From Ostrea edulis (Eukaryota), in NCBI RefSeq assembly GCF_947568905.1, contig NC_079170.1, forward strand, positions 4,402,001 through 4,466,000: a DNA stretch of 64,000 bases. The letters are read 5' to 3'. The notes beneath the pieces are model-generated. The model was not told where the DNA came from, did no database searches, and saw only the letters and a program-made list of their open reading frames with translations. Position numbers and translations under genes: made by a program. Below are positions 26,445-55,799 of the stretch, in pieces (within the stretch, counting starts at the first letter, position 1; every line of letters starts with the position of its first letter).

Positions 26445-27695
26445 ACTTGACCCCTAAGGGTAGATGTCGTAAGTTTTCTCTCTGTAGCATGGCTTTCTGC
26501 ATGCTGCACGATTTCCGTGGGTTTGGGCAAATGCGATTACTTTTAACTTTACTTTCGCAGTAAACGAGTGATGTAATTTACCCATCTTAAATGCAGTTAT
26601 GTTTGAATTCCCCGTTTCACTACCATTTAATTTTTTCTTTACAGACGGAGCATCAATTGTTTACGGCACCAATTAAACTTTTGGCTTTGATTATTATAAT
26701 TTTGATAATTATCGAGTGGGGTTGATACATGTATACTGCACCTTTGTACATCATTTTTCGCAGCTTCGGTAGTTTGTCAATTACAACACATTGAATGCCC
26801 ATTCAATATTTTGAATTGATGTATATAACGTCGGCTATATGATTTGAAGTTTAAACGAAAAAAATATATAGTCTGTTAAATGTTTAATAGAAATGCTACA
26901 AAATCTCGTGCTTTACTGAAATCTACATTTCTCCCAGAAGATACTCGGTGAAGATTACCGCTATAAGGCATGAATGCCATTTCTTAAAATGTTGCTCCGC
27001 TGTATTGAGGCCTTACATTATTTCCACATAGAATTCTAGTGAAATTAATCGCAAATAATAAAATCAAGATTGGTAAGAATTTTTGCCGCGTATTATACAC
27101 ACGAGCTATTATTCTTCCTCAATTCTCAGACTCAAAAAGGGGGTGCGTATCAAATAGCAATGCGTATTTTATTCGACAAAACACGGTATATTTCATAGTG
27201 TGTTTTTTTAACTAAAACAGTAAAAAGCTACACTGCATGAAAAGCGGCGTTTAATAAAATTAAATTTCATTAAATCTACACTTTACATCAACTTTCACTT
27301 TAATTCAGATTTAATGTTGAATTATACTTGGAAGTATCACAGAAATTAAATCTCAACTTTACTTCAGATATAAAAAAAAAAATAAACGCCATTAAACTGC
27401 AAATATAATTAAGTTTCCGGTAAAACGAACGTCATACGACAAATTGCTTGTACACAGACAATGCAACGTTGAGATGTCCATGCTATGAACCAAACCAAAC
27501 CAAAGCATAGAAAAATATTAGAGCACAAACTTTTTATCACCTCATAAAAGTTCGACAGCTGATATTATTTCGTAGATTTTCAAAAGGGGGTGCAACCCAG
27601 GTTTGAATGTCGAGTTGTTGACCATTCAGAAAGGTATGGGTGAAGAGCCCAAAATGACTTTAATATTAAAATGATACACCAAAGAGAGAGGGGGT

Positions 27696-28221
27696 GCAAT
27701 ACGCAAGTTCCGGGTTACCCAAAAGTTATTTCCCTTTGTCGAACTCTTTCGCATTTTATGACGTATGGTGGGTACACAATGTATACATTATATCGTAGAC
27801 TGGCATTGTACATAACGATTACGTACGATTAATGTAATAGAAGAGTAACTTTTGTTTATATCAATCACTGGTATACATATTCTGGCCATATCAAGCATAA
27901 TTTGTTTGAATAAGATCATCAAATTGGCTATTGAATCATTATTCGTTTCCTCTTCTACATGAGTGACGCTTTTATCAAAGAAAGATGGCAATTAACAATA
28001 TTTGTTAGAGCCATTTTCTTATCCAATACTCATAAACTCACTAAAGTTGCCTTTTCCCTGAGATAGGATGGTCTCAGAAACTCTGGATATCATCTTTTAA
28101 GAAATAATACAACGATAGTAATTACCAAATGTACCCACTGTCATCATATTTTACGTCATAATTTACGGAAGAGTTCGACAAAGGGAAATAACTCTTGGGG
28201 AACTCGGAACTTCCGTATTAC
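27696..28221. mobile_element. MITE-like element with long imperfect TIRs
   Basis: AATACGCAAGTTCCGGGTTACCCAAAAGTTATTTCCCTTTGTCGAACTCT at the left is mirrored by its reverse complement at about 28150-28219. Confidence 0.7.
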
Positions 28222-28343
28222 CATGCTCCTTTTAAATCTGCCACTATTCAGCAAATGATACAAGTTTGACCTTTTATACTAAATGTTCACATCCGCTTCA
28301 GTGTGAAACCAGTCCTGCATGGTTGTCTTCTTTTTTTTTACGT

Positions 28344-28555
28344 CCCTCTCGAGAACTTTTTACTCATATGGAGACCACCATTGCCGATGAAACGGTGCAA
28401 AATTTAGGTAGATGCTCTCAGTTTAGTTTTGAACAGGGAGGGGATCTTTTAACGTGCCACCCCTGCTGTGACACGCCCCCCTGTTATGGCTGTCTTATCT
28501 GAAAGACTGCCCCATTTAGTCGCCTCTTACAGTCAAGGGGTACTGAGGACCTATA
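28344..28555 (-). mobile_element. SINE body/tail fragment (resembles bivalve tRNA-derived Meta-type SINE)
   Basis: Homologous to 55800-56000. The family name is from memory of the TGTCACAGCAG..TGGCACG..AAAGATCCC motif and was not searched. Confidence 0.55.
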
Positions 28556-28845: not shown

Positions 28846-29199
28846 TTCCAAGATGGCTGATGCCAACTGGCACAGGACGTGCATCCTTCCAAGATGGCTG
28901 ATGCCAACTGGCACAGAACATGCATCCTTCCAAGATGGCTGATGCCAACTGGCACAGGACGTGCATCCTTCCAAGATGACTGATGCCAACTGGCACAGGA
29001 CGTGCATCCTTCCAAGATGGCTGATGCCAACTGGCACAGGACGTGCATCCTTCCAATATGGCTGATGCCAACTGGCACAGGACGTGCATCCTTCCAAGAT
29101 GGCTGATGCCAACTGGCAAAGAACGTGCATCCTTCCAAGATGGCTGATGCCAACTGGCACAGGACGTGCATCCTTCCAAGATGGCTCATACCAACTGGC
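28846..29199. repeat. 41-bp tandem repeat, about 8.6 copies
   Basis: Unit TTCCAAGATGGCTGATGCCAACTGGCACAGGACGTGCATCC at 28846, 28887 ... 29174. Confidence 0.97.
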
Positions 29200-29307: not shown

Positions 29308-32100
29308 TCATACATTTACCCCTTTAATAACAGGACAGATGTAAGATACATTCTTGTTAAAAAGCATACCATCAGCACATATGTATTTACAACTGATTCT
29401 CTGAACTGGAATGAAAGCAGAAGGCCCAAAAGTTTCATAAACATTCTGTCTCCACAACTCAACAGGCTTCCCACAGTGATATTTATGCACATTCGGGAGT
29501 GGCACAAGCCAAAACACTTTTGCAAATAAGTGAACACGGCTTTAATTTCCAACGATAAGGTTGTGTTGAAGAAAATATTGAATCACTCCAGGATGAAGGT
29601 CTCCTGTTCCAACTTCTTCAATGATATTTCCATCGTTGGAATGCCAGTAAGCCATGACAAATGAGGAACGCTTGTGACGAGATTGAACAGAACCATAAAC
29701 TTCTCCACCAAGAGATATGAAGGAACATTTTCTGAAGGACTTTGGAATGCATTCAATATGTTCATGAAGATCTGGATAAATATGTCTGTATGTTTTCTGT
29801 AACATATCAAAGTCTGCTGAACACATTACATGACATGATGTCTTCTGACATGAAAAAGCAGAACAAATTTGCCAATCCTGTCCAACAATATGGGCACTTC
29901 TTTTCGACATATACAAAATTTTCAAAATATCTGAATCAGAACGAATTCTGTCAGAACATAATTCTGTCACATTTGGAAAATGTTTCTTAAATTCATCAAA
30001 ATATAAACCAGGGAATTGCAAAGAATGTACAAAAGAATCTCTTAAAAAACCTCTCATAAGCTGCATTTCTATAGATCTGCTATTGTTTGGCATACTTCCC
30101 AAATGACCATTATATCTTTCAAAACTAAAAAGCCAAAATGAGTAAATGGGACCATAATCAAGCACACACTGTGATAAATGACAATGCATATGCATATTTG
30201 GTGTTATACTTGAAACACCATAAACTCTTTCTACACCTTTACAAAACTCAATAACATATCTATCAAATCTAGCTATTTCTACATTTGAAATAAATTTAGA
30301 GGTTAGAGTTCTGCAAGCTAAAACAAAATTTCGCCATACCTCCAAATCTGTTTTAGGTAAAATATCTACTAGTGCAAAAATTGAGAAAAAAATTGTCCAA
30401 TTTTTCCATTGCTCAGCGGTAAATCCTCCAAACGAGGATGCAATTTTTCTAGGAATAGTCCCTATGTTGCTTGCTGTATCAACTGAATCAACTTTTTGCT
30501 GAATTAAACTTAATTGATCTAAATGCAAAACCTTTAAATGAAGCCATAATTTCATCATCTTTTTAGCAGTCCCTTGAAATAAATTATGCATTGGATCAAC
30601 AATGGACATTCTTATTGGGTCAAAATAATCAATTTCACTCAATACTGAATATTTAACTCCATGAGAAGCTTCAAGTTTTTCTTTCTCTGTTTGAGTTTTG
30701 GCTTTTCTTACAACTTTCATAGATAAATTATAATCATTCAATGTTCTTGCTGGCCAATTATCAACATCAAAACCTGAATAGTCTTTTTTGCCTACACCAC
30801 CTGGAAATTTTTTGAAACATTTTGAGCAACCTAATGTTGCAGAATGACCCAAAAACCCACACAATGTACGTGTTGCTGGAATGTCACATCCAACACACAT
30901 AAGCGCAACTTTAAAATTCTTTTTTACATAAGGACTCTTATATGAAGCCAACTGAAATCCCTGCGACCATGCTACTTTAAGTTCATTAACAAGAGGTGTT
31001 ATGAAACTATTTACACACCTATTAGCAATACATTCTTCAATCTAAACCGTTCACTTCTAGGCAAATTCAAAATAACTGCATACAATACACCAACAGAATA
31101 TTTAACGTGCTTAAACGGCTGAAACCAATCTAAATTCAACATTAAACCATAATTATTTCGATGGCATAAAAAATTATTTTTTTCTGTACTTTGAAACTCT
31201 TTCCAGACATTCCCATCATAAATATCTGTTAGAAACCCGGGTGACTTTTTCCTTGATCGCCAATGGTCACAGAGGTCTTCAAACCTTGGCCTCTTAATCA
31301 AATCTTGCAAAGATTCACGAATAGGTTTATAACAATATGATTTAAAAGGATAAAGTTTTCTTGTACCATCTAAAAGTGTTACAGATTTCAACAATAGCTC
31401 CCCACATGGTTTTCGCCTTGCTGGTTGTGAATGGTTAGGATATTCCACAAAAGGACATTTTGTTGAAACAATTTGACCCTCTAAAGTCAATAAACATTCA
31501 CTATACTTGTAAATCGAAAAGCATTTTCTGCACACAACATACTTTGTGAAATTGTCTCTTTTCAAGCCTACTTTTTTCCACAACAAATAAACTGAACCTG
31601 GAAAGATGGCGGCTAAACTTGAAAATGCTATAGATTCTCTTCCTATTTGACAAAAAAATGTATGCAAAAATGAGAGAAGGCTGTTTATAACAGAGTCTGG
31701 CAGCATGAAAATGGATTGCCAAGTACATATAAATATACATAACCACATCAAAAGTGTCCCAAGATTCATGTTTGGGTTTGGAACAGTTCCATCATTAATT
31801 CCATTTTCTCCACAAAGCTCCTCCATCTGAAGGTCTAAATCTATATCCTCTAAACTTGTGCTATTCCAAACCTCATCTTCACTTTCAGAGTCTGTGTCAC
31901 AATTTTTTTCATAATTTTTTTTTCGTAAATAGGATTGAAAAACATCATGTAATCTATGAGAAGATACATTTTCATCTGATGAACTATCAGATAATTCCTC
32001 AATGACCTCATGAGATGAAAATTCAATATTTTCAAAGACAGATCTAGATTTGGAACAAATCCATTGATTATTACAGAAGTTTCTTTCTCTGTGCTATTGG
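29308..32100 (-). pseudogene. EnSpm/CACTA-type transposase, disrupted
   Basis: Motifs DIYDG..W, LNLDWFQPF, LNLPRSERF, CDIPATR.LCGF.GH...GCSKC, DPMHNLF.GTAK, TPNMH...HL, FSFERYNG.LG. In-frame TAA at 29542-29544, an apparent deletion/frameshift near 31010 (LIGV|NSFITPL), and a stop in the acidic N-terminal region. Confidence 0.88.
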
Positions 32101-32530
32101 AAATATCTAGAAGTAAATGATTGTTTACATCCTGGAGATTCTTTTCTCGACATTTTTTTCCGCTGAGCTTGATGGGAAAATGAGAGTTTTTGTTTCCCCA
32201 ACATGTTTAATTGCTTATCAAAATAAACTTTTCCAAAAAAATAAAATATGATTTCAATAGGAAAAAAAAATTAATAAAAAAACCCAACCCAAAACAATAC
32301 TAATAACTGGAGTACATGTATCAACACAGCCAATTTTTGTTTTTGTTTTGTTTCTCTTAACAAAAAACTAAAAATAAATTACGAAAAGCAAAGTGAAAGG
32401 ATAGTGCTAAGAACTCAAGAATTTTGATATGTTCACTCATACATGTACCTAATGTAAAAACATTGAAAATAATATAGTCAAAATTTTAAACAAAATTTGC
32501 ATTTTTTTTTCTACTCTTAACTAAATGAAT

Positions 32531-33938
32531 TCAATAGTTGGTAAATTTTAAGAGCTTCTCCCTTTTGTCTCTTTCATCATCCAACATCTTGCACAATTTA
32601 ACTGTTTCCCTGTCTCCATTCCCAAATAACTCCTTTGCTGTCTTGTAGGTGTTTCTTTTCTCTACACAGGTGTCATCTATAAATATGCCATCCTCCCTAC
32701 ACTGCACATTTACTTCCCTTTCTGCCTCCTCCACTTTCCCTAATAAAGTTTCCTCCTCTTGTTCAACTTTCTCTACTGAAAAATTAAATGATGTTTAATA
32801 AATTAATATACAATTAAAATCTAACAATCATAACAATTGACAGATTAGATCTTATATGATCAAAATACCTCTATTTAGAATAAATGAAAGACCCATGAGC
32901 CAATATGTTTGGCTCACATATGCAACTCTTCTGATATGCTGACATCAATATTATCAGCACTTCACAAGAAGATATAAAAATTGTCCAGTACCCCCCCCCA
33001 CCCCATTATATATACTTTTATACAAAATTTTAAACCCCTCCTGTTGCCCCATTCCTAGGCCTGTACAGACATTTTGTATAAAGATCTTTTTTTTCTCTTT
33101 TGGGGGAATGTCTGGTGCAGTGGTGCTGTAGTTTTGAAAAAAAAATAGGTTGTTTCACCCTATCTTTAAACTTAGGTAAACTTTCTCACTAACCGATGTG
33201 AGCAGGATTCGAACCCGCGATGACCAGAGGTGAGAGCGTAATGCTCTAACCACTCAGCCACTGAGGCCCTATTAGTGAACAAAATATTGTTTAAATTAAA
33301 AAAAATATCAAATAATATCTTATTTTTTTTTAAATTATCTCCCTCTGACAGGGCATCAGAATCCTTTTTAAAACAATTTGGATTATAACTAGCCAAACTG
33401 TTAAGTTTTAGGAAAAATGTATAAAACCTAAAAAATAATCCATGAGAACAGACAGATGAGATGCACAGATCAGAAAAGCCAAATTTCGCCTTCAACTCAT
33501 TTCAGCTAATACAAAATTTGCATTAATTTCTCTATCATGAAGCTATAAAAATATTCAATTTACTTCCATAGCCTGCCTGTAAATATAAATGTAAGCTTAA
33601 TTTTGGTAAAATATTGAAATTAATTTCAAATCATAAAAAACCCAGTAGTTTAATATACATTGTACATGACAAATAAGGTCAACATTAATTGATCAGGAAC
33701 AAGCAATCATACATGGTATTACTTGTCCACATACTGTGATTATATGTTCATGTACACTGTACTAAGTCTAGCATCCTTTATTGCAAATTCATGTAAAATA
33801 TTTACTGTTTTCTTGATTGAAATCTTTAAATGCCTCTGAACTCTCATTTAACTGCCGGAGCCTTGCCTTTTGCATTCTGTTTCTTCTTCTGTTTTCTTGC
33901 CTCTTCTTTCTCTTACTTATTAAAGAATGTCTTCCCAT
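32531..33938 (-). CDS. Predicted two-exon 125-aa protein with basic N-terminus (exons 33938-33806 and 32775-32531)
   Basis: MGRHSLISKRKKRQENRRRNRMQKARLRQ... A phase-1 GT donor (33805) and TTTTCAG acceptor (32776) join in frame to EKVEQEEE...FTNY*. An acceptor also precedes the ATG. Confidence 0.6.
33198..33268 (-). mobile_element. tRNA-derived SINE head
   Basis: Minus strand GGCCTCAGTGGCTGAGTGGTTAGAGC...GGGTTCGAATCCTGC: A and B boxes present, anticodon arm irregular. Confidence 0.55.
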
Positions 33939-36326
33939 TTTATCTACAATAATGAAATAAAACTAGAGTACTCATATTCCCTCATAATTTTTTCCTTCAA
34001 CTTGAAATCAAGGAAGCAATGTTTATGCATGCCATCTTATAAATGAAAAGTTTACAACAGCGACTGCCGACAAATTCTCAACTAATAGAAAATTCAGTCT
34101 TCGACGTTAACCAGTGGCCCGCAGTCAGACCTGACCGATGTGCAGTGCCTAAGGTCCGATGCATCATTTTTTACACCGGACCAGAATGTCCGATGTCTCA
34201 GTGTCCGGTTTTGAGCTTTATTATTTTGAAGCGGAGTCATTTAAATGTTTGTTATGAGTAAAAAATATCACACAAATCCAAATACGTAAATGAATGTGAT
34301 TAAACCCCATGGACCGTCTAAAGTATTATGCGGGAGGGATCCCTGGTATAGTATTACTAGTATAATAAATTAAGATTTACTTGGTTTTACATTTTCACGT
34401 GTTTCACTTTTTTACATTAGGTTTTTCGGTCTGACAAAATTTGGTTTGGTCCGGTGTGTTCATTGATTACACAGGACCGAATGTCCTATGTGGTCCAAAA
34501 AACTTTCGCATAGACTGGGCCCGATGCCCGTAAAATCGGGATTCTAAAAATATATAACCCAGGAGTCCAGCGGGCCTGTAAATGTTTTCTTATATATGTT
34601 CTGTATATATGATAAATAAAGCGCGAGATCGACTCCAACTTGGTCACGACTAGCAGTCACATTTTGCATCGTAAAACGATCAACCATACTGCATCGGACC
34701 AAGGGTAGGCCTTGGCTAGGATTTGATTCTGGAGAAAACAAAATGTTTTGTACGTGGTATATACAAAACAAAGTAGAACATGAGCTGCTGATGTGTCTGC
34801 GAGATTAATATGTTGAAAAATAAAATAAGATAATCCTTTTAGTGTCAGTTGTTCTCTAACTATGATCATCTTGATATGTATTTTCCTACAGTTGAACATG
34901 CATGTATCTATAGTGTAGAATCAGCATGCAGCACCTGGCAAATGACAAGTGGTCAAATTAGAAAAAAACATTTGGGCCTTTAAAATATTGTTCGGGCTTG
35001 CAAAATTATTATACTGGGAAGCCCGAAGGGCCTGTGCTTCACAAAGTTTTTCGTGAAGACTAGAAATGCTTTATTAAACCTTGCAAGTTTGGCTCAGGTG
35101 AGCTAATTCTTCTTATTAAATATAATCTACAGCAATCTAGTAAAAATTGATTGTATAGTAATTAGATGAATTTCTTACCACCAGATATTCTTTTGATGTT
35201 AAATGACCAACTTCTGTACAGCAAATTTTTTAACCTGAAATATGGAACAATTAATTGTTTTCAGCCATTAATAATATCCTCAACAAGGGATTCAGGGGGT
35301 CTAGGACCCCCCCCCCCCCCCCCCCTTTCCAGAGCAAGAAGACCCCCTTTGTAGAACAAGAAGATATTCACATAAGATATCACTGAATGGAAAGTCTAAG
35401 GTGGACGCTTATTAATTGCAGTCAGTTACGAGTATGGCAATTAGATCGACAAGAACCGTGGAAGCAAGTAGTACATGGCTAAGTATATAGAGCACCTCAC
35501 TATAGATTTACAGGGCCCAGGACAAATCTCAATCTTGTCTACTACAAATTCCAACCCTTGTAGACCCCCCCCCCCTTACAAATTCCTGGATCCGTCTATG
35601 CTCTAATCCACATGTTTCTCATACATGTATGCATATAAACAGCCAAAGTACACCCTAACAAATGGTCTCTGCTACCAACATCACATAATTCCTTTGGTTT
35701 ATTTGTACAAAGTACACAAAATCACAATCAGGGTTAAAAATATCATAAGAAAAGGCAATCGGAAAACATATCATTTTGGATGACTATTTACACACACAAA
35801 CATGTGATGTCAATTTCCCTGATGTATCTATGATATAATATCAACACATAATATTAGGAATTATCAACACTTACAAATGTTGTACATAATGAATGTACAA
35901 CTGTTCTGCCACAGCTCTCTGTTTTGTCAGTAAAAAACGCCCAGTAGTTTTACCTCTTTATTCATGTAGCAGTAATTACAGTAACAAACTGAAATACATA
36001 TAAACAAATTCTGCTCACACATATATCAGAATAGTTGACTTAATAAATTCAGAATTTCACATTTACTTTAGAAAATTTTTAATTCAAATAGCATAAAAAT
36101 AAATAGAATGAACATACATTGCTGCCCCTTTACACCGCAAGATCGATGGAAAGCGTCCCAGACGCTGTGTTGGGAAAATGACTCCCCGAGTCTGTCCTCG
36201 GTGCACGAGAAAAAATGTCTTAATGTTCAAACCGGATGTAATCACTATTAACTAAATAAACGTTTTCCGGACGACCCAACGAATTCCGGTGGCGTCACAC
36301 TCCCCGCCTGACATCTTATGATGTCA

Positions 36327-39300
36327 CTATGATGAAGGTGTAAACAGGTGAACAACCTCTGTAATGGGTCTAACACACGTAACACAGTTACCGTTCCTAA
36401 CAAGTCGGAGTTCTACTTTACGTACATGTCCATCGTTGCTAGGGAAGGTTCGAAGAACAATTGCCATTGGCCATTCGTATCTGACAGTGTTAGTATCCTT
36501 CAGTAACACTACGTCGTTGACCTTGATGTCCTCCCTTGAAATAGTCCACTTTCGCCTTGATTGCAGACTGAACAAGTATTCCAGTTGTCATCGTTTCCAA
36601 AACTGGTTGGCAAGGACTTGAGTGTGTTTCCATGATGTTCTATACATGTCTTTCAGATCAACTGCTTCAAAAGGTCCATAATCGACTTCTGTCTTTTGTG
36701 TAAGTAGCACTGAAGGAGATAGAACTGAAGGTTCTGTTGGATCAATGGATACATTAGCCAATGGACGACTGTTGATAATAGCACATGTCTCATACATAAA
36801 AGTGTTGAGAACATCATGTGTAAGAAGCTTCTTAGACTCCATGATGATGGCATTAAGAATTCTGCGAGCTGTTCCAATGATTCTCTCCCATATCCCTCCC
36901 ACATGAGATGCGTAAGGTGGGTTAAATATCCAAGTAGATCCATTTTCCACCATGAATTTCCTTACTGGTTGAGATTCTACGTTGATAGTATTGATGTTAA
37001 GTGCATCTGTACTCCCCACAAAGTTAGTTCCTCGGTCTGAATGAAATTCGGTAACTTTGCCACGAATCGCTACAAAACGTCTAAGGGAGTTAATGAAGGC
37101 ACTAGAAGTCATCTCGTCCACCAGTTCTATATGCACTGCTCTACTAGCCAAACAAGTAAATAAGATTGCCCATCTCTTGGAATTTGCTACTCCTCCTCTT
37201 GTTTTCCTAGCTGATACTTCCCAGGGTCCAAAGGTATCAACTCCTACGTAGGTGAAAGGTGGTGATGGTTTACATCGAAAATCGGGTAAGTTTCCCATTT
37301 TTTGTATTTCCGGCTTCCGGCGTAGTTTTCTACAGGTAATACAAGAGTTTAGTACTGATGATACAAGTCTCTTGGCGCCCATGATCCAATAACCTGCTGA
37401 CCTCACTCCGCCCTCTGTAATGTGACGTCCCTGATGTCGACATTTTTGGTGGTAATACTTTACAAGTAGACTCGCCACATGTGACTTTTTGGGAATGATA
37501 ATCGGTCCATTTGATCCGGCCATTAGATCTCCCGTAAGGATTCTGCCTCCTACACGAAGTAATCCCCCATCGTCCAGATACGGGTCTAGGTTTCGTAGGG
37601 GACTACCTTTGACAACTGATTTGTGATCTTGAAGTCTCTCAATGTCTTGTCTATAAACTTCATACTGCGCACTTTTGATAACTATCATTTCCATATCTTT
37701 GTGCAGTTTTGTAGGACTTATATCTTCAAGGTTGAGTTTCCTGTGAATTGATCTGCGAATGAATGACAGTCCACGAATCAAAGACTCCCAGGATGAAAAT
37801 CTTAGGAAAAAATTTGTGTTCAAACCACAAGACACATTTGTTTTAACAACAATCACAGTGTTTTTGATTTTAGAGTCATTTTTTGGATCCAGTAATGGGA
37901 ATTCTGATGAATGGTCACACGAGTCGTCATTCAAAATAATTGGTCCAGATAACCATGAAGATTTTACTCATTCGTTCACTGGCATAGAGCGCGTTCCAAT
38001 ATCAGTTGGATTCTGGTCTGATGCGACAAAAGTCCACTGTTCAGGAGATGAATTGTTGAGTATGCGATGAACCCTGTTAGAGACGTATGTGTGAAATCGC
38101 CTAGTCTTGTTATGTAGGTACCCTAAAACAACTCGGCTGTCAGTATAGAATCGAATATCATCAATCTGTGTATCAAACTGACGTTCAACAAAGGTAGTAA
38201 TTTCTGTAGCAAGAAGTGCTGCACAAAGTTCTAGCCTTGGAATTGTATGTCCATGGTGAGATGCTAATTTCGATTTCCCTGTAATGAATCCTACATGATT
38301 TTTTCCATTTCTTGTAATTTTGATGTATGTGACAGCTGATATGGCCTTTTCAGAAGCATCTGCAAAGGTATGGAGCTCAATCCTTTCTGCATTTTTAATG
38401 GATGTTGGAACATAACGTCGAGGTATTTCTACTTCAGACAAGTGATGGAGAGAACTTTGCCATGACCGCCAGCGCAAGATGATGTCCTTGGGTAGCAGCT
38501 CGTCCCATCCGAGTTCCAACTGTGTTATGTCACGGAAAATGAATCTTCCTGATAGAATGACTGGTGATAGAAAACCTATTGGATCATACAGACTATGCAA
38601 ATAAGATAAAACGCCTCGTTTTGTTTCTGGTACATCTTTGAGATCCGTAGAGAAGGTAAAAGTATCTGACGATATGTTCCACTTCAAGCCCAGACTACTC
38701 TGTGATGGTATAGTATTTATATCTAATTGTACGTCACTAAGATCTCCAGCCCTGTCCCCAGGTGACAAAGCATCCACGACGATCTGACTATTGGAGGCAA
38801 ACTTATGGAATCTGATTTTACCTCTCTCCATGAGTATTTTTTGTGTTTGCAGCAAGACGTCTAGGGCTATAGGATGACAGTCCATCATCGACATAAAAGT
38901 TTCTAGTCACATAATATTTCACTTCACTGTCAGATGGTTCTTCTACACATCTATGAAGACAATATGCTGCGACTGATGGTGAAGGGGAATTTCCAAAGAG
39001 GTGCACACACATTCTGTAGTTTCTTAAAGGCTTTGTTGGGTCGTTATTTCCAAACCAAATAAAGCGGACAAAGTTTCGATGTTCTTCGTCTAAGCGAAAC
39101 ATATGGAACATCTGTTCTATATCCCCTGTGATTGCTACACGTTCCTTGCGGAAACGTAAAAGGACACCTAGTAGATTGTTGGTAAGATCAGGTCCCTGAA
39201 GTAATGAGGAATTCAGTGATTGTCATTGGTAAGTAATGGACGAGTCGAAAACCATACGGATTTTGTTTGGTTTCTTTGGATTGAATACCGGAAAGATAGG

Positions 39301-42265: not shown

Positions 42266-43587
42266 ATTTAATCACCGATGTCAGCAATATGTCACAACTA
42301 GCTCACGGTAGATTTGCACATACCATATATAAACAAACATGTCACTGTCCAAGGAACACAGGAAGTATCACGGAATACAAGGTGATGGTACAGGTAAGGA
42401 GAGGATTAGGTGGTAAGCCCAGCTTCACAGGTATCCGACATCCGCGGAAGAACGTATTATCCCCAGGATAGGTCCGTTGTCGATCCTCGATGGGTGGTTG
42501 AGGTAGAATACTCACGATTTTGTTACCGTTCTGCCACAGCTCTCTGTTTTGTCAATAAAAAACGCCCAGCAGTTTTACCTCTTTATTCATGTAGCAGTAA
42601 TTACGGTAACAAACTGAAATACATATAAACAAATTCTGCTCACACATATATCAGAATAGTTGACTTAATAAATTCAGAATTTCACATTTACTTTAGAAAA
42701 TATATAATTCAAATAGCATAAAAATAAATAGAATGAACATATATCGCTGCCCCTTTACACCGCAAGATCGATGGAAAGCGTCCCAGACGCTGTGTTGGGA
42801 AAATGACTCCCCGAGTCTGTCCTCGGTGCACGAGAAAAAATGTCTTAATGTTCAAACCGGATGTAATCACTATTAACTAAATAAACGTTTTCCGGACGAC
42901 CCAACAAATTCCGGTGGCGTCACAACAACATTCACGTAAAACTTCCAGCCTTCATGTTTACTGTTTGTCATCTTAGTAATATTAGGAATGCCGAACCCAA
43001 TCGAACATGTTGCATGTGTTGTGCGATCTCGAACGAGTACTGGCTTAGATTAATTTTGTTCCCACTGCCATCAAAAACAACCTTTATGCCATTACTTATG
43101 AAAGGTTCTTATAAGACAACTTACAAGTTGTGTATTTAAGCTATTTCAAAGCCTTAATATTTGCAAATTAAATTGAAATAAGGTAAACAAAAAAATGATT
43201 AAAAATTTAATGAATTTATCTACTAGCTTTTGGTAAAAATTTGCCATACTTGGGCATGGATGGAAATCTATGATTTTCATTATTATTATTTATAAAGAGA
43301 CTCTAATTAGACATATGTAACCCGGTGTGTTTTTTTATCAGTAATTTGAATTATGCAAAAAACTACAGGTAACTTAAACTAAACACATGTGCGTTTGTTT
43401 CATACATTTCTTCAAATATGGTAGTCTTGATAGATAATGTATCTCCTACCATAGAAATTCGAAATTTTATCAATAAATTAAATAAGATTCACTCGATTGA
43501 CCAAGCCATGGGCTATGCGTTATGTTTTATATTGACTTTATCGATAAGATTTCGAATTCCTGTGCTCCTTGCAGTACATAACTTGCG

Positions 43588-45705: not shown

Positions 45706-46304
45706 TTAAACAGGTTGAGGGTAACAATTGCCTAGTTGATTGATGAATATGTGAAAAGCTGCCCTGATGTTGTTTAGGAAAATGTCGTTGCCCATATCCG
45801 AAAGGTGTGTTCCATCAAATCTAAATAAGCACACGTTTCTTGCTGAGATGTTGTGATGGTTAATGACCAACCCCCCAAATCTAACACGAACTTAAGAATT
45901 CTTTTGTTAACCTTTACACGTTTTTTGTTAATCTTACCACCTAGTTTGCCAGGAACCCCATGCCAGTATAGGCGGGGCAAGATGGAGGACCATACTAATG
46001 TAGTTTGTGGGATTAGGGCATTATATCTGAGAAATGAACACTTTATTTCCTCTACCAACTTTTTGCCAGTTAGGCCTGGGGTGACCAAGTCGTTTGAACC
46101 TAGATGTATCACCATGAATCTAGGTGCAGGATACTTCCTCAGGAGGTCCATCACCAAGGGGTCCAATTGTTGCCACTGCATCCCCCGTCTTCCATGCCAA
46201 TGAATGTGGGCTGGTAAGTCAAGGTTTTTTCCGCCTGTGCGGTTTGATGTCGACTGACCTGCCCAAAATGGGATTGAAGACCCGAGGATCCATATTGAAC
46301 AATC
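45706..46304 (-). pseudogene. SGNH/GDSL-like hydrolase ORF of the YR element
   Basis: IWILGSS (46283-46275), GRRGM, HLGSND, and DGTH after a one-base frameshift near 45860. No in-frame ATG precedes block I. Confidence 0.78.
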
Positions 46305-46433
46305 TGAAATATCTTTGGTTTGGTTACTTATTTGTTATGTATTGATGGTAGGGGTGTCATTACTTAAATTGTGTGTCCTGTAGTGGTCCGAGGGCTGCGA
46401 AGTCGCATTACATGCGGATGTATTTCTGAAAGG

Positions 46434-47388
46434 CTAAAGACTTCCATCTCCCAAATGATTGTATTTGCTGGTCGGAAAAACCCTGTAGAGCCAAATCAGT
46501 GGCCCGACCGATTCGAAAATATGGGTACCAAAATGACCTGGTGTACTGATAGCCTGAATTGCTTTCTGCAGTACTGCATTAAATTGGAATCTAGTCAAAG
46601 GCATAGCATTACTGTGGATGAACAGACAGTGAGTGTCTGAGGTGTGTGGCCTTATTGCTAGGAAATTGCGCATACTGTGGACTGGGCATGCGATCGAGTG
46701 GGGCTGACTCCGAATGAATATAGTGGGTTTTTTTGCCCGTTTGGTCGGTTTTGGAATGAGGTATAGTGAATGTGACATGTTTGCTTTCCTCCCCCAGAGT
46801 AACATGTTGAAATTGAATGCAATGAGAATATCGGCTATTGCAGGAGTTTGCCAGAGTGAATTCGCCTACTCGGAGTAAACCAAAATAGGCCAGTGAGAAG
46901 GCGCTAGCAAAGAGTGTAGATTCGAAAGAGGATGTGCACACAAAAGGTAGATACGCTAGCAATTTTTCTAGAATGGGTAGGGTAATCGGGTACCGAGTAT
47001 CTGGGGCTGTGTTGCCACGTGCCAACCCTTGTAGAGCTTTTGCGACTAAGAAGGAGGCAGTTGGATCTGATACCTGCCTTACTTTATGAAAATATGCCAA
47101 TGCGCGTATGTATAACTGAACTGTATTTGGGGACATATGTTGTAACGACAAATATGCGATAAAGTTTAAAATTATATCTAAGGGTAACGGCCAGGAAATG
47201 GCAATGCCAAAAATCTGGGCAAATGCATGGAATTTCTTCAGTGCCGAATTGTAAGCTTTGTTGGAGTTATCAGACAGGGCGTTGTTGATGAGGCGTTGTG
47301 ATTCTACCTTTAGATATCCCATATTTGGTTGGGTAGCTGGGTTGGCCACTGGTCGGCGTGGGGGGCGAGATGTCGAAATCTTCTCCAC
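46434..47388 (-). pseudogene. Tyrosine recombinase, frameshifted
   Basis: SAM-like N-terminus, GLLRVGEF, HSKTDQ, CPV, LTRFQF, HIF..G; split over two frames near 46.8 kb. Confidence 0.88.
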
Positions 47389-48992
47389 TGCGAACGAGAA
47401 ATACTATCTGCTATAACGTTGCGTTTGGAGGGTATGTATTGCGCCTGGATTGTAATATTGTGTTGTAGTGTGATGAGAACCAATTTTCGAACAATTTTCA
47501 TGACCCTGTGAGATTTTGAAGTAGCGGAATTGATAACCTGGACTACAGCAGAATTATCTATGTGGAAAAGAATACGTTTGTTAGCCAATTGTGGCGACCA
47601 TAGCACGATTGCTACATATACCGGGAAAAGCTCAAGGAATGTCATGTCCCTAACTATGTCCGAAAGACTCCAGCTGTGCGGCCAGCTTGCATGAGCCCAG
47701 CTACCTGCAAAGTAAATGCCAAACCCCCCTTTTGTTCCCCCAGCGCTATCTGTGTATAATTGCAAGTACGAATCCGATGTCAATGTCGGAGAGGAAATGA
47801 CCGAAATGCCGTTGAAGTTTGCTAGGAATTGTTCCCATACTCTAAGGTCTTCCTTGATGGAAGAATTGATTCTGATCTTATGGTGTGTTTTGGTAGTGCC
47901 CATAGTAGCATCAATTAAACGTCTGCAGAAGGCTCTCCCTGGTGCTACCGTTTTACATGCAAAATTTAGCAGCCCAATGAGTGACTGAAAAGATTTAAGA
48001 GTAGCTTTTTTACTGTGAAGGAAGACATGAATGCGCTGTTTGAGCAAAAGTAGCTTGTCCTGTGGGAGTCGCATGATCATATTCACTGTGTCTAGCTCTA
48101 TACCTAAGAAAATAAGGATTGTAGTTGGGTTTGTAGTTTTTTCGAGAGCAATGGGTACACCTATATCTTGGCAAATGTGTTTGAATTCTGAGAGAGTAGC
48201 CTGACACTTGTTTGAATTTGCGGAGCCCATGAACAGGAAGTCATCAAGATAGTGTAAAATGGATGGATTGCGTGTCCTATTTTGGACTATCCAATGTAAT
48301 GCCGAAGCAAATCTTTCCCAGGTTGCACAGCTGACTGATGCCCCAAATGGTAGCATTTTATCGTAATAGTATTTGTTCTGAAACTTGAAACCTAAAAGTT
48401 CGAAATCTGAGGGAGCAACAGGTATTAGACGAAATGCCGATTTAATGTCGGATTTGGCCAAGTAGGTTCCAGGGCCCAAGAAGGATATGATGGCAGCAGC
48501 ATCGTCAATGGATGCATAATGAACAGAACAAACTGCTGGGTCAATGAAATCATTAATAGAGTCATACTCGGGGAAGGATAGGTGGTGTATTAACCGAAAA
48601 TCCCCATCCTTTTTAGGTACTAAGCCTAAAGGTGAAACTTGTAGCGAGTGGAAGGGGGGTGAATCGAAAGGCCCCCCGACTCGCTGGAGCAGTACTTCTT
48701 TCTGAATTTTTTGTTGAGCTAGTTGAGGATTTAGTACTATGCTTTTTAGATTATTGGAATCCCTTGGGCGCCTTGGCCCTTGATAATGTAAACTAAAACC
48801 AGATTGAAAGCCTCTAATGAGAAAAGGTTGATCACGATAATTGTGTAGGTAATGGGCAAGTTGGTCGACATTGATGGGGGTTTTCCCAAGTGTATACAAC
48901 GATTGGTAATTATTTTGTTGCCCGGCACTTTGATGCTGGATGATCTCCACCACACCCTTTGCATCTGTGGCTGAACCTACAATTTGGTGCAA
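47310..48992 (-). CDS. DIRS reverse transcriptase-RNase H
   Basis: 560 aa; VPKKDG.FRLIHHLS, DIKSAFR, LPFG, HYLDDF, YTDSAG, ELFP, DN.AVV, N..AD.ISR. Confidence 0.93.
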   Translation of the reverse strand: MHQIVGSATDAKGVVEIIQHQSAGQQNNYQSLYTLGKTPINVDQLAHYLHNYRDQPFLIRGFQSGFSLHYQGPRRPRDSNNLKSIVLNPQLAQQKIQKEVLLQRVGGPFDSPPFHSLQVSPLGLVPKKDGDFRLIHHLSFPEYDSINDFIDPAVCSVHYASIDDAAAIISFLGPGTYLAKSDIKSAFRLIPVAPSDFELLGFKFQNKYYYDKMLPFGASVSCATWERFASALHWIVQNRTRNPSILHYLDDFLFMGSANSNKCQATLSEFKHICQDIGVPIALEKTTNPTTILIFLGIELDTVNMIMRLPQDKLLLLKQRIHVFLHSKKATLKSFQSLIGLLNFACKTVAPGRAFCRRLIDATMGTTKTHHKIRINSSIKEDLRVWEQFLANFNGISVISSPTLTSDSYLQLYTDSAGGTKGGFGIYFAGSWAHASWPHSWSLSDIVRDMTFLELFPVYVAIVLWSPQLANKRILFHIDNSAVVQVINSATSKSHRVMKIVRKLVLITLQHNITIQAQYIPSKRNVIADSISRSQWRRFRHLAPHADQWPTQLPNQIWDI

Positions 48993-49902
48993 ACTTACAA
49001 TTTATACCAGCGTTAAACAACTTGCAAAATAAGGTGTTGACCTGTGTTTTATATTGGGGATAATTGCCGGGAGACTCGCGATGCATGTTCGGGGCCGCGG
49101 AGTTTTTTCCCGAGGGTTGTGAAGGATGAGTACCGTTTGTGATATACAAGAGCCATAGCTCGGAGTTAATGATTCCCCACGAAGACTGTGGGTCAGCTTG
49201 TTTTCTCAAGCGAAACTGCTCTTCATAGCGGAACCACCCCGATGACCTGGACGCGGCCAGTCTGATATCTCACATATATTTAAGTAACTCTTGGGCTCTG
49301 GTTCTGTATTTTTCTAGCATGATACTGGTGAAAATAATGAAAGCCGATGACCATTTTTCAATTGACAGAAAGGAATTATGTTTAGGCTTGACGAGGCACA
49401 TGACACCATTTCGGATTTCGATTTGTCCCTGAGTTTCAAGATGGCCGTCCAGTTCCCGCGCTGACCTAAGCAGTAAGGAAATGTCGATAAATTTTCCCTC
49501 CCAAATTTGATTTTTGAGTTTTTCCGGGACATGAAAGCTGACAGGATCGAAATAGCTATTGATTACCGAGGGTTGATACTCCGCGACTGAGAAATTGGGT
49601 CCCGCCAAGTCGACAGCCGGCGGGAAAATGTCAATGGGGGGAATAAGACATTGATGGTTTACGTCAAACTCACCTGACGGATTAGCCTGCAAGTCCTGAA
49701 TGGCATGAGTGTCGTCAGTCTCTGATTGTGTGGTTCCCCCCGCTGCATTTACAACAGCGGATGCCGTAGGTATGGGCCTCGAGGAGTCGGTGGCCACGCT
49801 GTTTGGCCTACGTCTTCTCCCACGTCCCCGGGCTGGGGACACGAATTGACGGTTTCTTTCCGCTTCTGAAAGTCTTGTCACCCTGGTTCGCACGGGTGGC
49901 AT
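48910..49902 (-). pseudogene. gag: DIRS gag-like ORF with one nonsense codon
   Basis: KYM*DIRLAASRSSGWFRYEEQFR..SWGIINSELW (TGA at 49270-49272) and a C-terminal Cys/His finger (C..FN..C.F...C.FSHRC..CGGDH). Confidence 0.82.
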
Positions 49903-50832
49903 GATGATGGCAAATAAGGATGAAGAAGTAGTCGATAATATAGATTACACTTCGTCTAGCGAAAATTCGTGACTTGTCTGCTTGTAAACGGAAACGGAAG
50001 AGGCAAGTATTGGTCCGTTTGGTTAAGTCGTACTTGGTGTGCGTTATACGAATACGTCGTACCACGGTAAAGCCACCAAGGTGATAACACAAAAGTAATA
50101 TAAGCAAAAGAACTTCGGTCAATTAAGCTGGATTATTTGACATTGAATTCAAATAATCTTCATTAAATTGATATAAATACATTGTGGATCAGGGAAGTCA
50201 ATAGATATTAACACAGGAGTTATTGGCCCTGACAACACTTTTTTTTAGAAATAGATAATTTATTGATAAATTATAGAAAATATTAACTTTTTGGAGCTAC
50301 CTTAAATACTTTTGCCTTTATGTTGCTAGGTTTCTATTGGAGGGAGATGTATCCCCCCTCCTTAGCCTGGATTTGCAAAATTCAGGATTTTTAATATGCA
50401 TTGCATACTAAGTGATTCATATTTAATTATATCCTCCAGCTTCCAAGAATGTCGTCCTTTGAGATGGATACATCATACCAGACTGGACAAAAATCAAAAC
50501 TCTCCCCAGGTGAAGAGGTATGTTGAAATATGAATTAGAAAATAATCCACTTTTTCCCCATCCAGATTGTGAAAAACTAAATATTCTGTTAATATTATTC
50601 AATTCATTTAATTGTTAGGAATTTTAGGAAACATTTGATTAGCGCAGAACTCTCAGTCAATGAGAGTAAGTGATACTCTAGGTAAATTAAATCAGAAGGT
50701 TGATTTGCTCCCTCTGTCACTTCTTAATTACAAACATCCTTTTGAACAAGATTTTGATAAATAATAACATGCATGTAATACAAGGGGAACCAACATTTTA
50801 TTTAACTGAAATCATAACAATATATGTTATTA

Positions 50833-50964
50833 TGTGAGGTGGTCAGACCGGGATTCGATTGCTGATGGCTAGATACCCCAATTGGTAGAGCACCTGACTA
50901 GAGATACAGAGGGTCTAGGTTTAAATACCGGCCTGGTCTGTTGCATTTCTCCCATTCTGTTGCA
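50833..50964 (+). mobile_element. Diverged tRNA-containing solo LTR related to the 63-kb TRIM
   Basis: TGGTAGAGCACCTGACTAGAGATACAGAGGGTCTAGGTT matches the 63-kb LTR core; ends in TGTTGCA. Confidence 0.55.
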
Positions 50965-51230
50965 TATTAATAGTGAACTGTAATTACCTTCATCTGGTAA
51001 ATGAACTGTCCTTTAGACTTGTTGTTCAGGATGACTTAACAGACTTTGTTTTCAGAATAAAAGTACACCAATTGCAATGCCTAGTACAAAATGAGACTGA
51101 ACCTTGTTTGTTTACAAATATTTCAAGGACAAAGTCCATAGAAAGGTTTTATATAGTGAATGAGGAAATTCTATCCGTACAATAATGTGCATATTCTTTG
51201 AATTCTTTTTTATTATTATTATAGGCTATT

Positions 51231-54203
51231 ATGCAGTATTTAATCAAACTGGATAAGAAAATGGACAAACTTCAAGATGACTTAAAATCGATGAGGGAAG
51301 AACTTGCAGTCAATAAAACAGGAACTAGGAGAGATGAACAACAGAAACTTTATGTTCCTGCAAAAATTAGAGTATGTATTATGAATTCATACAATAACTG
51401 TGTTAATTATGAATTTTTGTAATTCCATGATAATTTAGCCATCAGAAAAGGGTAAATTCATTATCAGCTACTTCAAAGTTGTTCTTTTTCCATGCATTAT
51501 TTCCTTATTACCCCCTTGAAAACTGAGTTTTGGTAGGACTTGAATGATATCACAGAATTAGGTCAAATGGTGCAGAAAGGTGAAATCTCAACTTGGAAAT
51601 TCAACTCAAAATCCTCAGATTACTGTGCTAGTAATCTACCAGGAAGCAATTTATATCCTCATTATTGACTGATTTATCAGCATCTTCAATATGCTAAACA
51701 ATTTGTTGTTTTGTCTCATGATTCAGAAACACCAAACTATTCCTCACTGTATAATATAATATTCTTTATTATGTAGACAGCTGTTCATGATGCATACAAA
51801 CAGCTTGTGGACGAGGATGGTGCTGTCAGATGGCAAACTAAGCTTGAAGACAATAAACTAAAGTATGTAATTTTAATTCAATTTGATTAATTTTCCAATT
51901 CAGGTACTTGTAGAGCTCCACCCTCTTGTGACTTATAAGCATATAATGGTTTGAAATGAAAAAGCTATTAAATTCCACTAAGATATAGTTTAGTTTGATA
52001 AATAACCAAAAGAAAATGCGTTTGTTGTCATCTTTTAAAGATGTCAGACAGAAATGGAGGTACATGTCAACATCGGAAAATGGCACATTTTCTTTAAACA
52101 GAATAATGAAAATAAAACTTGATAAAATGACAATTTTTTAATGTTAACCATTTCAAAACACTGCTGCTTAGCCTTTATAAATATGTATCAATTGATTGTG
52201 GATATCGGGGGGGGGGGGGGGGGGGGTCATATAAATATAGATATGCAGTAGGCAAAATATCAGCATAGGAGTTATTGCCCTTTATAACATTTTCTATTGT
52301 AGATAATTGATTTTATGGAAAATATAAAATTTCTATAAACAATATATTTCTATCATGCACAGAGTTCAATTTGATGTAGATGTTGGAAAAGTCTATGACG
52401 TCACACGAGGAAGGACTTTAAATATAAGATTATTGAGAAAACTTGTACTATTTTACATGTAAGACCAAATAAAATTGTATTTATGGTTCTCAGGCCAGCG
52501 CGCATCCATTCAGAGGTTGCCAATGTTATCGATTTTTCAATAAAATAAAAAATTGGAAATGCGCTTACGTATCTTAGTGGGGGGGGGTGGGGGGTGGGGG
52601 GTGCGCGGGAGGAATCTGAATTTCACATTTTGCGTTCGGAATTCTCTTTACACATTAATGTGTTTTGAAGTTTCATTTCGTTTGTTTGTTGTTTTTCATT
52701 CAAGTAACAAACACATACTGACTGGTAAATGTTTGTTAAGACCTGAAAATTCCATCAACTCAGCGGTCCACTTGACCAGTGAATTTTTTTTATTTCAAAA
52801 ACTTTGTTTAATAAGCTTGAAATTATACCTTTGAGACATTGCAAGATTCATCTAGTTTTTCCAATTTTAGAGCATCTTCTGAAGTGAACAAGGCCACCAC
52901 ACAGTCTATAAAGCAGTTTGTAAAAGGGCTCTATCCTGAAGTCCAGGAAGGATTATTACAAAGTAAGTTATATTTAATTTACTGAATGCATTAGCATACT
53001 GCCTTCCTAACTTAAATCAACTGGGATGCTCTGTACGTACATGACCTGTTTTTAATTAAAACAATTTAATGACTTATTATGAGATGGATCACCATTTGTT
53101 ATCTTCACTTTTTCAGTCTGAAGGATGATTGTTAAAAAGTAAACAAGAACAACTGCAACTTTAAAAGAAAGAAAAAAGAAATTTAAAACTCTGAATGAGC
53201 AATATGTTGAGTAATGTGTGTGCAATATAAAGTACAAGAATGACCAAAACTCAATCAATATTGTGTCATTGATCCTTCTTGTGCTTTATATTGACCTCAC
53301 ATTCTCTTGATAGATCTGACACCATTGGAGCAAGAATGTTTTTGGTATATAAATCCTTTAAGATAGATATATAGACACATAAATGTATATGTTCTATTCT
53401 TGTAGCTGCAATTGCCAGATATTTCGAATCAATGGCACAGAGAGAACATAAAGAAAAAACAGGCAAAGTGGAGCAGCACAAAACCAAAATGCTCCACTAC
53501 AGCAGGAGGAAGAGGGTACGAATTTACATAGTAGTAGTCTTGTGAATTTTCAAGAATCTTTAATGATATGCATGTTTAAGGTGGCTCATTACACCCATAA
53601 ATGTTTTCTTAAATCAGTACGAATTGATTTAATCATAAAAGATATGATGATATATAATAAGTATATATACCAAAAAGGCAGAAAATATGCAAATTTGGAT
53701 AAAAATATGATTTTCAAAACAATTATTTCAACGTAGTGTCATAAAGAGTATAAGCTTTAGTGTAGTGAGCTACCTTAAGAAATGAAAAGGCAATGTTGTT
53801 TATATATAATCCTGATTATGTTGTTCAGATATTCCTGATTATGTTGTTTAGATATTCCTAATTATGTTTGCAGAAATTGCAGTGGAGAAAGTCCATGGTG
53901 GAAAAAAAAACTGGGTGGGATGAGGCAAAGAAGAGACGTGTCGGTGATGCTCTGGTGCTGTCATATATGTCATCAGAGGATGAGCACAACACCAACGATG
54001 GAAGTTTTTTAAAAACCAAACCTCTTCGTTGGAGATAAGAGGAATATGTGAAAATATTGGATGATCTTGATTGCAAATATGACAGGTCTATGTCTAAGCG
54101 TTCGCGCAGACAAATGATGAAGCGAATTAAAGGTGACATTCCCTCAGCAAGGCAGAAACCGGCCCAGATTGAACCGGGGCATGAATGGGTGTTTGCTCAT
54201 TGA
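51231..54203 (+). pseudogene. Five-exon CACTA accessory (TnpA-like) gene with a premature stop
   Basis: Exons 51231-51371, 51777-51862, 52871-52962, 53406-53515 and 53874-54203, all GT-AG with compatible phases (0,2,1,0), 252 codons. Motif YMSSEDE..KPLRWR*EE..LD; TAA at 54036-54038. Confidence 0.75.
53580..53774. mobile_element. 195-bp Kolobok-like MITE in intron 4
   Basis: TIRs GGTGGCTCATTACAC / GTGTAGTGAGCTACC (2 mismatches); TTAA on both sides. Confidence 0.75.
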
Positions 54204-54723
54204 AGCAATAATAGCTGCCATTTTAGTGTCAAAAGGTTTTGTAAAACTTTTTATTTCTTCATTGAAAATTTGAAATTTTTCAAAACTATTTTAAAATATA
54301 ACGCCTGAAGATTATGAAATGAAAGCGCTTGCGTTAAAATTTTAACTTTGTGTACTGTTTATTTTATTTCTTTTAATATTTTATACCGGACACTGATTTA
54401 AAAAAAAAAAAAACAATTTGGATATACATGTTTATATATGTGTGTGTGTGTATGACTGTTTATATGTGTGGATGTGTTACTTTGTAAATAAAAATGCTAC
54501 ATGTCATATGGCTACCATAAATATCAATTGTGTTTTAAGATTTGTTGTGTTGTTTTCCAACTGAAGGTACATTGAATTGTAAAGCAATTTTTAGGTTTAT
54601 ATACAAATGAATGTGAAACCCCGTGTATTTCGGTTGAGATGTATTGCTATTGCATGCTATGGACTAGATTTGGATCTTCACGTAAAATTACATGTAATGC
54701 TACCTTAGCACCTCGTATAAATG

Positions 54724-55360
54724 AAATAAAATGAGTGGATTATACGTGAAATTCCACATAAAATTGTAAACTTGGGAGTATAACCAGATTAATTGTCATG
54801 AAAAACTGAAATAAAATGAGTGGATTATACGTGAAATTTCACATAAAATCGTAAACTTGGAGTATAACCAGATTAATCGTCATGGAAAACTGAAATAAAA
54901 TGAGTGGATTATACGTGAAATTTCACATAAAATCGTAAACTTGGAGTATAACCAGATTAATTGTCATGAAAAACTGAAATAAAATGAGTGGATTATACGT
55001 GAAATTTCACATAAAATCGTAAACTTGGAGTATAACCAGATTAATTGTCATGAAAAACTGAAATAAAATGAGTGGATTATACGTGAAATTTCACATAAAA
55101 TCGTAAACTTGGAGTATAACCAGATTAATTGTCATGAAAAACTGAAATAAAATGAGTGGATTATACGTGAAATTTCACATAAAATCGTAAACTTGGAGTA
55201 TAACCAGATTAATCGTCATGAAAAACTGAAATAAAATGAGTGGATTATACGTGAAATTCCACATAAAATCGTAAACTTGGAGTATAACCAGATTAATCGT
55301 CATGAAAAACTTAAATAAAATGAGTGGATTATACGTGAAATTTCACATAAAATCGTAAAC
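54724..55360. repeat. 84-bp subterminal tandem repeat, about 7.6 copies
   Basis: AAATAAAATGAGTGG at 54724, 54809, 54893, 54977, 55061, 55145, 55229, 55313. Confidence 0.97.
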
Positions 55361-55799
55361 GAAGTATAAAACGATTGTTTATGTGATATATAATTGACAT
55401 AAAATTGAAGTATAATTTTCATTAAATTTCGGAGTTTACAAAAAATGTTATCCCTAAGGAAATTCCAATTAAATATCAAGTATAATGTTGTATTAAATCT
55501 GTATTATACGTTTAAATTTGACATTTAATTGGGTAATAACTGGAATATAATTTTGAATTAAATGCAAATTTTCATGCAGTGCTAATTTTCCTTAAAGTCG
55601 TGAGTATCATATGAAAGTGGTGAAATTTATTATTAAGTGCTTCAAACGCAGAAAAATACGTCTTAGAAGTGAAGGAGGGCTATACAATTACATATTTTGA
55701 ATCATCTACCTATTATCTATCAGAATCTGTTAAAATGTGAAAATGGGTAAAATTGTCATAAGGGCCCTTTTGCCATGGGCGCAATCATATTGTTTAACG

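Follow-up and report, generated by a model that had tools for sequence, protein, structure and literature searches.

The 64,000-nucleotide stretch of Ostrea edulis DNA analysed here (C7:4402001-4466000 of an 895-Mb assembly; hereafter the window) contains, at positions 27231-55581, a 28,351-bp element that we interpret, with a probability of about 0.9, as one dead copy of a low-copy CACTA/EnSpm transposon family that measures 15.6 kb without its expansions. The element represents a new family within a known superfamily, clearly delimited and with plant-like ends, and comprises a Transposase_21-type transposase gene, a small gene upstream of it on the same strand, and a divergent second gene assigned through its relatives to the DUF8263 family. 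Positions are those of the window unless a chromosome is named, and whole-genome searches were run with each terminus of the element.

Termini, empty sites and copies of the element

The element has perfect 13-bp inverted ends that begin with CACTG, and a CTA lies on either side of it. Its terminal inverted repeats (TIRs), target-site duplication (TSD) and tandem arrays are as follows.

27228-27230, no strand: left TSD copy, CTA; a single CTA at empty paralogous sites
27231-27243, plus strand: left TIR, CACTGCATGAAAA; the subterminal region runs to ~27360 and carries three AGATT(T)AAT motifs
28846-29199, no strand: tandem array of 8.6 units of 41 bp, directly 3' of the transposase gene; copy number varies among family copies
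54722-55360, no strand: subterminal tandem array of 7.6 units of 84 bp, several of them with the AGATTAAT motif
55569-55581, minus strand: right TIR, the exact reverse complement of CACTGCATGAAAA (13 of 13 bp)
55582-55584, no strand: right TSD copy, CTA; a single CTA at empty paralogous sites

According to the genome search, the flanks of the window element belong to a dispersed repeat, of which there are more than 40 copies. In repeat copies that lack the element, the left and right flanks abut with an overlap of exactly one CTA, and five such empty paralogues, at 98% flank identity, lie on C7 itself (4.278, 4.782, 5.288, 5.394 and 5.532 Mb). Because these empty sites carry one CTA, the 3-bp target duplication is proven for the window insertion. 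A sister family whose ends are ~70-77% identical shows 3-bp duplications as well, with ATA, TTA, TTA, AAA and CTA in five independent insertions, so that the duplication was tested on seven insertions altogether (CTA, TAG and the five of the sister family) in addition to the empty sites. The CACTG ends expected of CACTA/EnSpm elements are common to the window copy, the copies on C3 and C1 described below, and the sister-family copies. A chance origin of the inverted repeats is ruled out by independent copies with identical ends and by the empty sites.

Repeated subterminal motifs, another feature of CACTA/EnSpm elements, are also present. The 9-bp motif AGATT(T)AAT occurs 10 times in the 15.6-kb copy, and 8 of these 10 are close to the ends, no more than 125 bp from the left tip or 715 bp from the right one. 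The 84-bp array accounts for four of the eight, the AGATTAAT motif having been counted there in 4 of ~7 units of the C3 copy. A previous sequence-only reading of the window had described exact CACTG TIRs, a CTA duplication and a 28,351-bp span with two tandem arrays, and had looked to an empty site joined through CTA as a check. All of this is borne out, as are the matching subterminal blocks, which are collinear between the two ends though short (10-18 bp).

The repeat that received the insertion (26760-27230 and 55582-55790 in the window) averages ~95% identity among its copies. At C1:52.096 Mb it adjoins a distant Transposase_21-like open reading frame (ORF; 26-27% identity), and it may itself be part of another CACTA-like element.

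Two copies of the family stand in unrelated flanks. The C3 copy (15,639 bp) has the same TIRs and a TAG/TAG duplication, and holds the transposase, the small gene and the second gene together, as the sequence-only reading had asked of a search for further copies. Alignment shows that the window copy is collinear with it apart from three extra segments, and the base element is therefore 15.6 kb rather than the 14-15 kb first estimated by subtracting the nested insertions. The C1 copy (22.2 kb; C1:90284176-90306333) begins and ends exactly at the TIRs. Its transposase region is deleted (window equivalent 29400-31762), and it bears an unrelated 9.2-kb insertion ~35 bp from the site at which a BEL element entered the window copy.

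On C7, the 28-kb nested element and its flanks are present in four copies, at 4.03, 4.33, 4.43 (the window) and 5.45 Mb. The three further copies share the flanks too, and are therefore duplicates of the window insertion. Together with the empty segments, this arrangement points, on sequence comparison, to a complex zone of segmental duplication in which the insertion is older than the last rounds of duplication. It could be objected that four near-identical 28-kb copies are an assembly artefact of uncollapsed haplotypes or mis-joins, given that they have their flanks and all nested insertions in common and are 97-100% identical over the terminal and flank stretches searched. However, the copies differ in sequence and in length (~28.1 to 28.8 kb), and they stand at distances of 0.1-1 Mb, with at least five empty paralogous segments in between; we thus regard an artefact as improbable.

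The transposase and the divergent second gene

The coding content of the element is organised in two directions around a central spacer.

29308-32204, minus strand: transposase gene (Transposase_21 and DUF4218, DDE type), disabled; an N-terminal zinc-finger-like exon starts near 32204
32531-33938, minus strand: small two-exon gene upstream of the transposase; exon 1 (~33806-33938) basic, exon 2 (32531-32734) acidic
44254-54203, plus strand: second gene, assigned to DUF8263 through its relatives; the long form has seven exons; disabled here
44254-44474, 50449-50523, 51225-51377 and 51777-51863, plus strand: second-gene exons 1-4
~52872-52961, ~53405-53515 and 53874 to ~54200, plus strand: second-gene exons 5-7

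The transposase of the window is broken by a 28-bp deletion at ~31014, which shifts the frame, and by a nonsense codon at 29542-29544. The C3 copy of the gene matches PF02992 at 29.8 bits (cut-off 28.6) and DUF4218 weakly; a one-base difference in an A-run shifts its frame. Database searches returned 956 homologues of the transposase, the closest being "uncharacterized protein LOC125660837 [Ostrea edulis]". In 14 aligned homologues, D5, D96, C115-x2-C118, H327-x3-H331 and E351 are invariant (numbering of the 620-residue ORF of the C3 copy). These residues fit the CMC signature (PMC12730594), and the protein is a CACTA/EnSpm transposase, broken in the window copy itself. All scored family copies that bear the transposase are broken somewhere or truncated. 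In the C3 copy, the frame-breaking differences seen in the transposase and in the second gene (at about element position 11765) are differences in the length of short A-runs only. Among the homologues, a 623-residue CACTA transposase (47% identical) is deposited on a 4.5-kb contig under a 'Candidatus Thiodiazotropha' metagenome-assembled genome; this entry is probably DNA of the bivalve host binned with its symbiont.

The second gene is supported by the pattern of its conservation. In a translated comparison with two relatives from the same genome, one of which has a transposase 70% identical to that of the window family, short blocks are conserved in a frame-specific manner and are separated by unconserved DNA of varying length, a pattern of exons and introns. 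A HMMER search with the largest exon retrieved 176 proteins, and the named members of the family come from oysters, mussels, scallop, ark clam, the annelid Owenia and the hydrozoan Clytia. The best match is a 279-residue Crassostrea/Magallana protein that aligns with the window exon for exon. This protein is carried intron-free on contigs of 1.2-1.5 kb from four separate sequencing runs, and because the oyster gene has introns, these contigs are spliced transcripts. A 348-residue RefSeq form adds two upstream exons, which map to the first two positions listed above, giving seven exons in total. The divergent plus-strand gene of the sequence-only reading is thus confirmed by exon conservation, RefSeq models and Crassostrea transcripts, with two more exons upstream than the five it had been given. 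In the window, the gene is disrupted twice, by the loss of 1 bp in exon 1 (~44361) and by a TAA that lies in frame within exon 7. RefSeq already models both the transposase and the second gene as uncharacterised proteins; the C7 second gene, LOC125674788, comprises the last six of the seven exons and ends at the premature TAA.

The products of the second gene and of the small gene were searched exon by exon or through their database relatives. PF26792 (DUF8263) has precomputed hits on the Crassostrea, scallop and O. edulis relatives, some of them marked weak, and was not listed by Pfam-library scans. When the second protein and ten relatives were scanned against Pfam, no TnpA-type domain and no other significant family was found, so homology to TnpA was not detected at this level. 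A search of the accessible literature found no mention of DUF8263. AlphaFold2, run with 80 family sequences, modelled the Crassostrea orthologue at a mean predicted local distance difference test score of 91, and its C-terminal 120 residues alone at 95. Foldseek searches with the whole protein and with the C-terminal domain returned nothing below E 0.1. With VIA-align, the helical middle domain reached a best Z of 7.3, with BEN (Z 5.2-5.5), TEAD and P-element rows tied at Z ~5, and the best value for the C-terminal domain was Z 4.2, its weak matches including several integrase core-binding domains; as the tool is calibrated, such values do not establish a fold. The protein is therefore best described as having a confidently predicted fold without a clear match to a solved structure. 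A BEN-domain identity was considered and found no support at the sequence level, as the protein scans gave no BEN hit and the BEN hits of this genome lie elsewhere. Atlas neighbours at template-modelling scores of 0.43-0.51 are uncharacterised proteins of molluscs, sponges, Mucoromycota (DUF4616) and Basidiomycota (DUF8263). Profile searches with alignments added only close oyster relatives, and the fungal link thus remains a lead from the Atlas searches.

A key observation is that the two genes stay together. Six lineages in the O. edulis genome have a transposase 8-15 kb from the terminal exon of the second gene and in divergent orientation to it, namely the window family and relatives at C8:25.80, C8:26.31, C8:56.12, C7:11.83 and C7:76.55 Mb. 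Transposase identity in these relatives runs from 70% down to 43% (43-100% relative to the C3 copy across the six). In the scallop Mizuhopecten, a DUF8263 gene is preceded 6 kb upstream, on the opposite strand, by a transposase homologue with an uninterrupted frame (58% identity over 605 residues); Clytia has two transposase homologues, and the closer one is placed and oriented in the same way relative to the DUF8263 gene. The other Clytia homologue, on the C. hemisphaerica contig at 18812-22742, is a more distant Transposase_21 gene (864 residues) convergent with the DUF8263 gene, and this locus may represent two CACTA elements that are adjacent or nested.

This pairing bears directly on whether the plus-strand gene belongs to the transposon at all. 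It might instead be a fragment of a host gene captured in the manner of Pack-type elements, or part of a separate inner element, and the second protein indeed has no recognisable transposon-related domain, while many sites have a DUF8263-like terminal exon but no transposase match nearby. A captured host gene would not keep such a layout across lineages, however, and the head-to-head arrangement is kept in six O. edulis lineages, a scallop and a hydrozoan. Moreover, the exons of the second gene are conserved and its introns are not, and the 15.6-kb copy contains no internal TIR or duplication that would set the gene apart. Capture, or a separate inner element, is accordingly very unlikely. The sequence-only reading had named, as one observation that would undo it, copies in which the transposase and the plus-strand gene sit in separate elements; the C3 copy holds both, and the pairing persists in the relatives. 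As for the lone sequences, at least 25 loci without a listed transposase match in their vicinity have open frames of 94-110 residues that resemble the last second-gene exon at ~44% identity (for example C2:39005293, C2:39030414, C9:66007225 and C1:111987697). These may be non-autonomous elements or an independent DUF8263 gene family.

The small gene is more difficult to place. A same-strand frame is kept in the C3 copy, relative to which the window frame ends 15 codons early. Its product has only nine matches in the genome, all of them in the window family or in stretches 56-58% identical at the protein level, including one in the sister element at C8:25.80 Mb, which has the 70%-identity transposase. 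In the scallop, a weak relative of exon 2 immediately precedes the transposase (34 residues, 50% identity, E 8e-6). The minus-strand gene proposed from the sequence therefore stands as a conserved frame, while its status as a gene separate from a transposase leader is at issue: it may be a separate gene or a part of the transposase transcription unit. One possibility, which we consider somewhat unlikely, is that it belongs to the transposase transcript, as 5' leader exons or as an upstream frame, perhaps with alternative splicing as in maize En/Spm. Its position directly upstream of the transposase start on the same strand (~290 nt away in the C3 copy), the exon 2 relative at the same place in the scallop element, and the precedent of SmTRC1 and En/Spm, in which several products come from one unit (PMC1636069), would all suit such a leader. 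On the other hand, the frame stops before the transposase start codon and has a start codon and a consensus donor site of its own.

Nested insertions and the history of the window copy

Of the three extra segments of the window copy relative to the C3 copy, two are nested elements of recognisable type.

35902-42924, minus strand: BEL/Pao long terminal repeat (LTR) retrotransposon, 7,023 bp, in the spacer between the divergent transcription units
35897-35901 and 42925-42929, no strand: ACAAC, the 5-bp duplication of the BEL insertion, as judged against the uninterrupted C3 copy
44754-50301, no strand: short TIR element (GGTAGCTCCA... ends, 10-bp TIRs, TTAA on both sides) in intron 1 of the second gene
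44972-50162, minus strand: retroelement with reverse transcriptase and a tyrosine-recombinase-like ORF, a candidate DIRS-order element by gene content, inserted at TTAA inside the short TIR element

The BEL element predicted from the sequence is well supported, not only by the ACAAC duplication but also by LTR copies from ~35900 and ~42525 that are 97% identical and have TG..CA ends, by a Peptidase_A17 domain (2.8e-45) and by an rve integrase, as expected of BEL/Pao. It is missing from the C3 copy, as is the retroelement at 44972-50162, and both are therefore private to the window lineage; the latter is absent from the C1 copy as well.

The second insertion had been read as a Kolobok-like element containing a DIRS/Ngaro element. 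A retroelement nested in a TTAA-flanked TIR element is indeed present, and both lie within intron 1 of the second gene. The retroelement has an RVT_1 match at 7e-15 and an ORF with a sub-threshold match (8.7e-4) to a SAM-like integrase N-domain; tyrosine-recombinase-like motifs were seen by eye only, and a structure search with this ORF gave no match to a solved structure. Terminal repeats were sought in it and none were detected; by gene content it is a candidate member of the DIRS order, with DIRS and Ngaro both candidate subgroups. The shell measures ~365 bp once its insert is removed. All family copies contain it, among them those on C3, C1, C9 and C8, which makes it an old passenger rather than an insertion private to the window copy. 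Relatives ~72% identical to it, with the left terminus in common, are found across the genome. No transposase was found for the shell, and Kolobok is a candidate superfamily only. The third extra segment relative to C3 is ~360 bp long (52223-52582), has poly-G tracts beside it and lies in an intron of the second gene. This poly-G-bounded region is variable (52190-52620 in the window): the segment is not in the C3 copy, and a larger stretch is missing from the C1 copy.

From these relationships we propose the following history. A Transposase_21-family DDE transposase would recognise the CACTG inverted ends, excise the element and re-insert it with a 3-bp duplication, and the element would be expressed from two divergent units, a leftward unit with the small charged protein followed by the transposase and a rightward unit with the seven-exon DUF8263 gene. 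The element would have inserted into the dispersed repeat, after which the BEL/Pao element entered the intergenic spacer and a putative tyrosine-recombinase retroelement landed in the older TTAA-flanked miniature element of second-gene intron 1. Mutations would next have broken the frames of the transposase and the second gene, and a premature stop would have cost the small gene 15 codons, before segmental duplication on C7 produced three more copies. The window copy is unable to move on its own.

Place among CACTA elements and significance

Several observations weigh against the interpretation offered here. The flanks of the C1 copy (..ATA / TAT..) give no clean 3-bp duplication. No copy in the assembly has all genes open, so current activity is unproven, and even the best copy, on C3, has two single-base homopolymer differences that are either real or assembly errors. 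Splicing and expression in O. edulis are deduced from RefSeq models and Crassostrea transcripts. For the second protein, the fold searches were only middling (best Z 7.3 and 4.2), its binding to DNA is something that we infer, and many DUF8263-like exons in the genome have no nearby transposase, as described above.

The element shares much with the CACTA elements of plants (maize En/Spm, Tam1, CAC1), including CACT(A/G) ends, a 3-bp duplication, subterminal motifs and arrays, large size, and a Transposase_21 (TnpD-type) DDE transposase accompanied by a second element-encoded protein. It differs in that its genes form separate divergent units, whereas the plant products arise from one unit by alternative splicing, and in that its second protein has no detectable TnpA similarity (DUF8263), a third small gene is present, and the host is a bivalve. 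With the TRC-type elements (SmTRC1 of Schistosoma and Spongebob/EnSpm-4N1_HM of Hydra) it shares an animal host, a Transposase_21 protein and additional non-transposase products (PMC1636069). SmTRC1 likewise has no TnpA-type protein, and TnpA is thus not needed for membership of the superfamily (PMC1636069). The TRC elements, however, have CCC... ends and 2-bp duplications (PMC1636069; PMC4298943), unlike the CACTG ends and 3-bp duplications of the oyster family.

The contrast that had been drawn between 3-bp duplications in plants and 2-bp duplications in animal EnSpm families must be qualified accordingly. It is correct for animal elements of the TRC type, including SmTRC1 and Hydra Spongebob, but 3-bp duplications with CAC..GTG ends are the norm for EnSpm proper, and the wider CMCT group ranges from 2 to 5 bp (PMC12730594). 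Similarly, the view of the element as a large animal CACTA with an unfamiliar divergent layout is upheld as to the layout, which is kept in relatives, a scallop and a cnidarian. Its novelty is to be toned down, since CACTA elements with two proteins are textbook material: a full CACTA element is commonly described with a second ORF, of unknown function, beside its transposase (bioRxiv 10.1101/2021.11.16.468883), and CMC elements occur in all molluscs examined (PMC10294476).

What the DUF8263 protein does is a more tentative matter. The ends of En/Spm carry clustered TnpA-binding motifs. The oyster element resembles En/Spm in the clusters of AGATT(T)AAT at its ends, and perhaps the DUF8263 protein is a TnpA-like helper that binds these motifs at both ends, a role that we infer and hold to be possible, though short of probable. 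It is tempting to speculate further that a clade of animal CACTA elements with CACTG ends and 3-bp duplications has DUF8263 proteins as its dedicated second protein, functional counterparts of plant TnpA, although we consider this broader proposal somewhat unlikely. If so, the pair would have been kept since before the split of cnidarians and bilaterians, or would have spread by horizontal transfer among marine invertebrates, and the modelled structural neighbours in sponges, Mucoromycota and Basidiomycota may hint at a CACTA-like partnership in fungi.

The family provides a reference bivalve CACTA element, with its ends, duplication, empty site, uninterrupted copy, gene models and order of nesting. 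Oyster repeat annotation could improve as a result, as the genes of the element are now labelled uncharacterised host proteins. The family also shows that animal CACTA elements are not all of the TRC type with CCC ends and 2-bp duplications. The most useful result is that DUF8263 can be named as a conserved partner gene of an animal CACTA clade: the domain is now linked to a specific genomic setting, since it marks the second gene of such elements from bivalves and one cnidarian, and a TnpA-like helper role becomes testable in animals.

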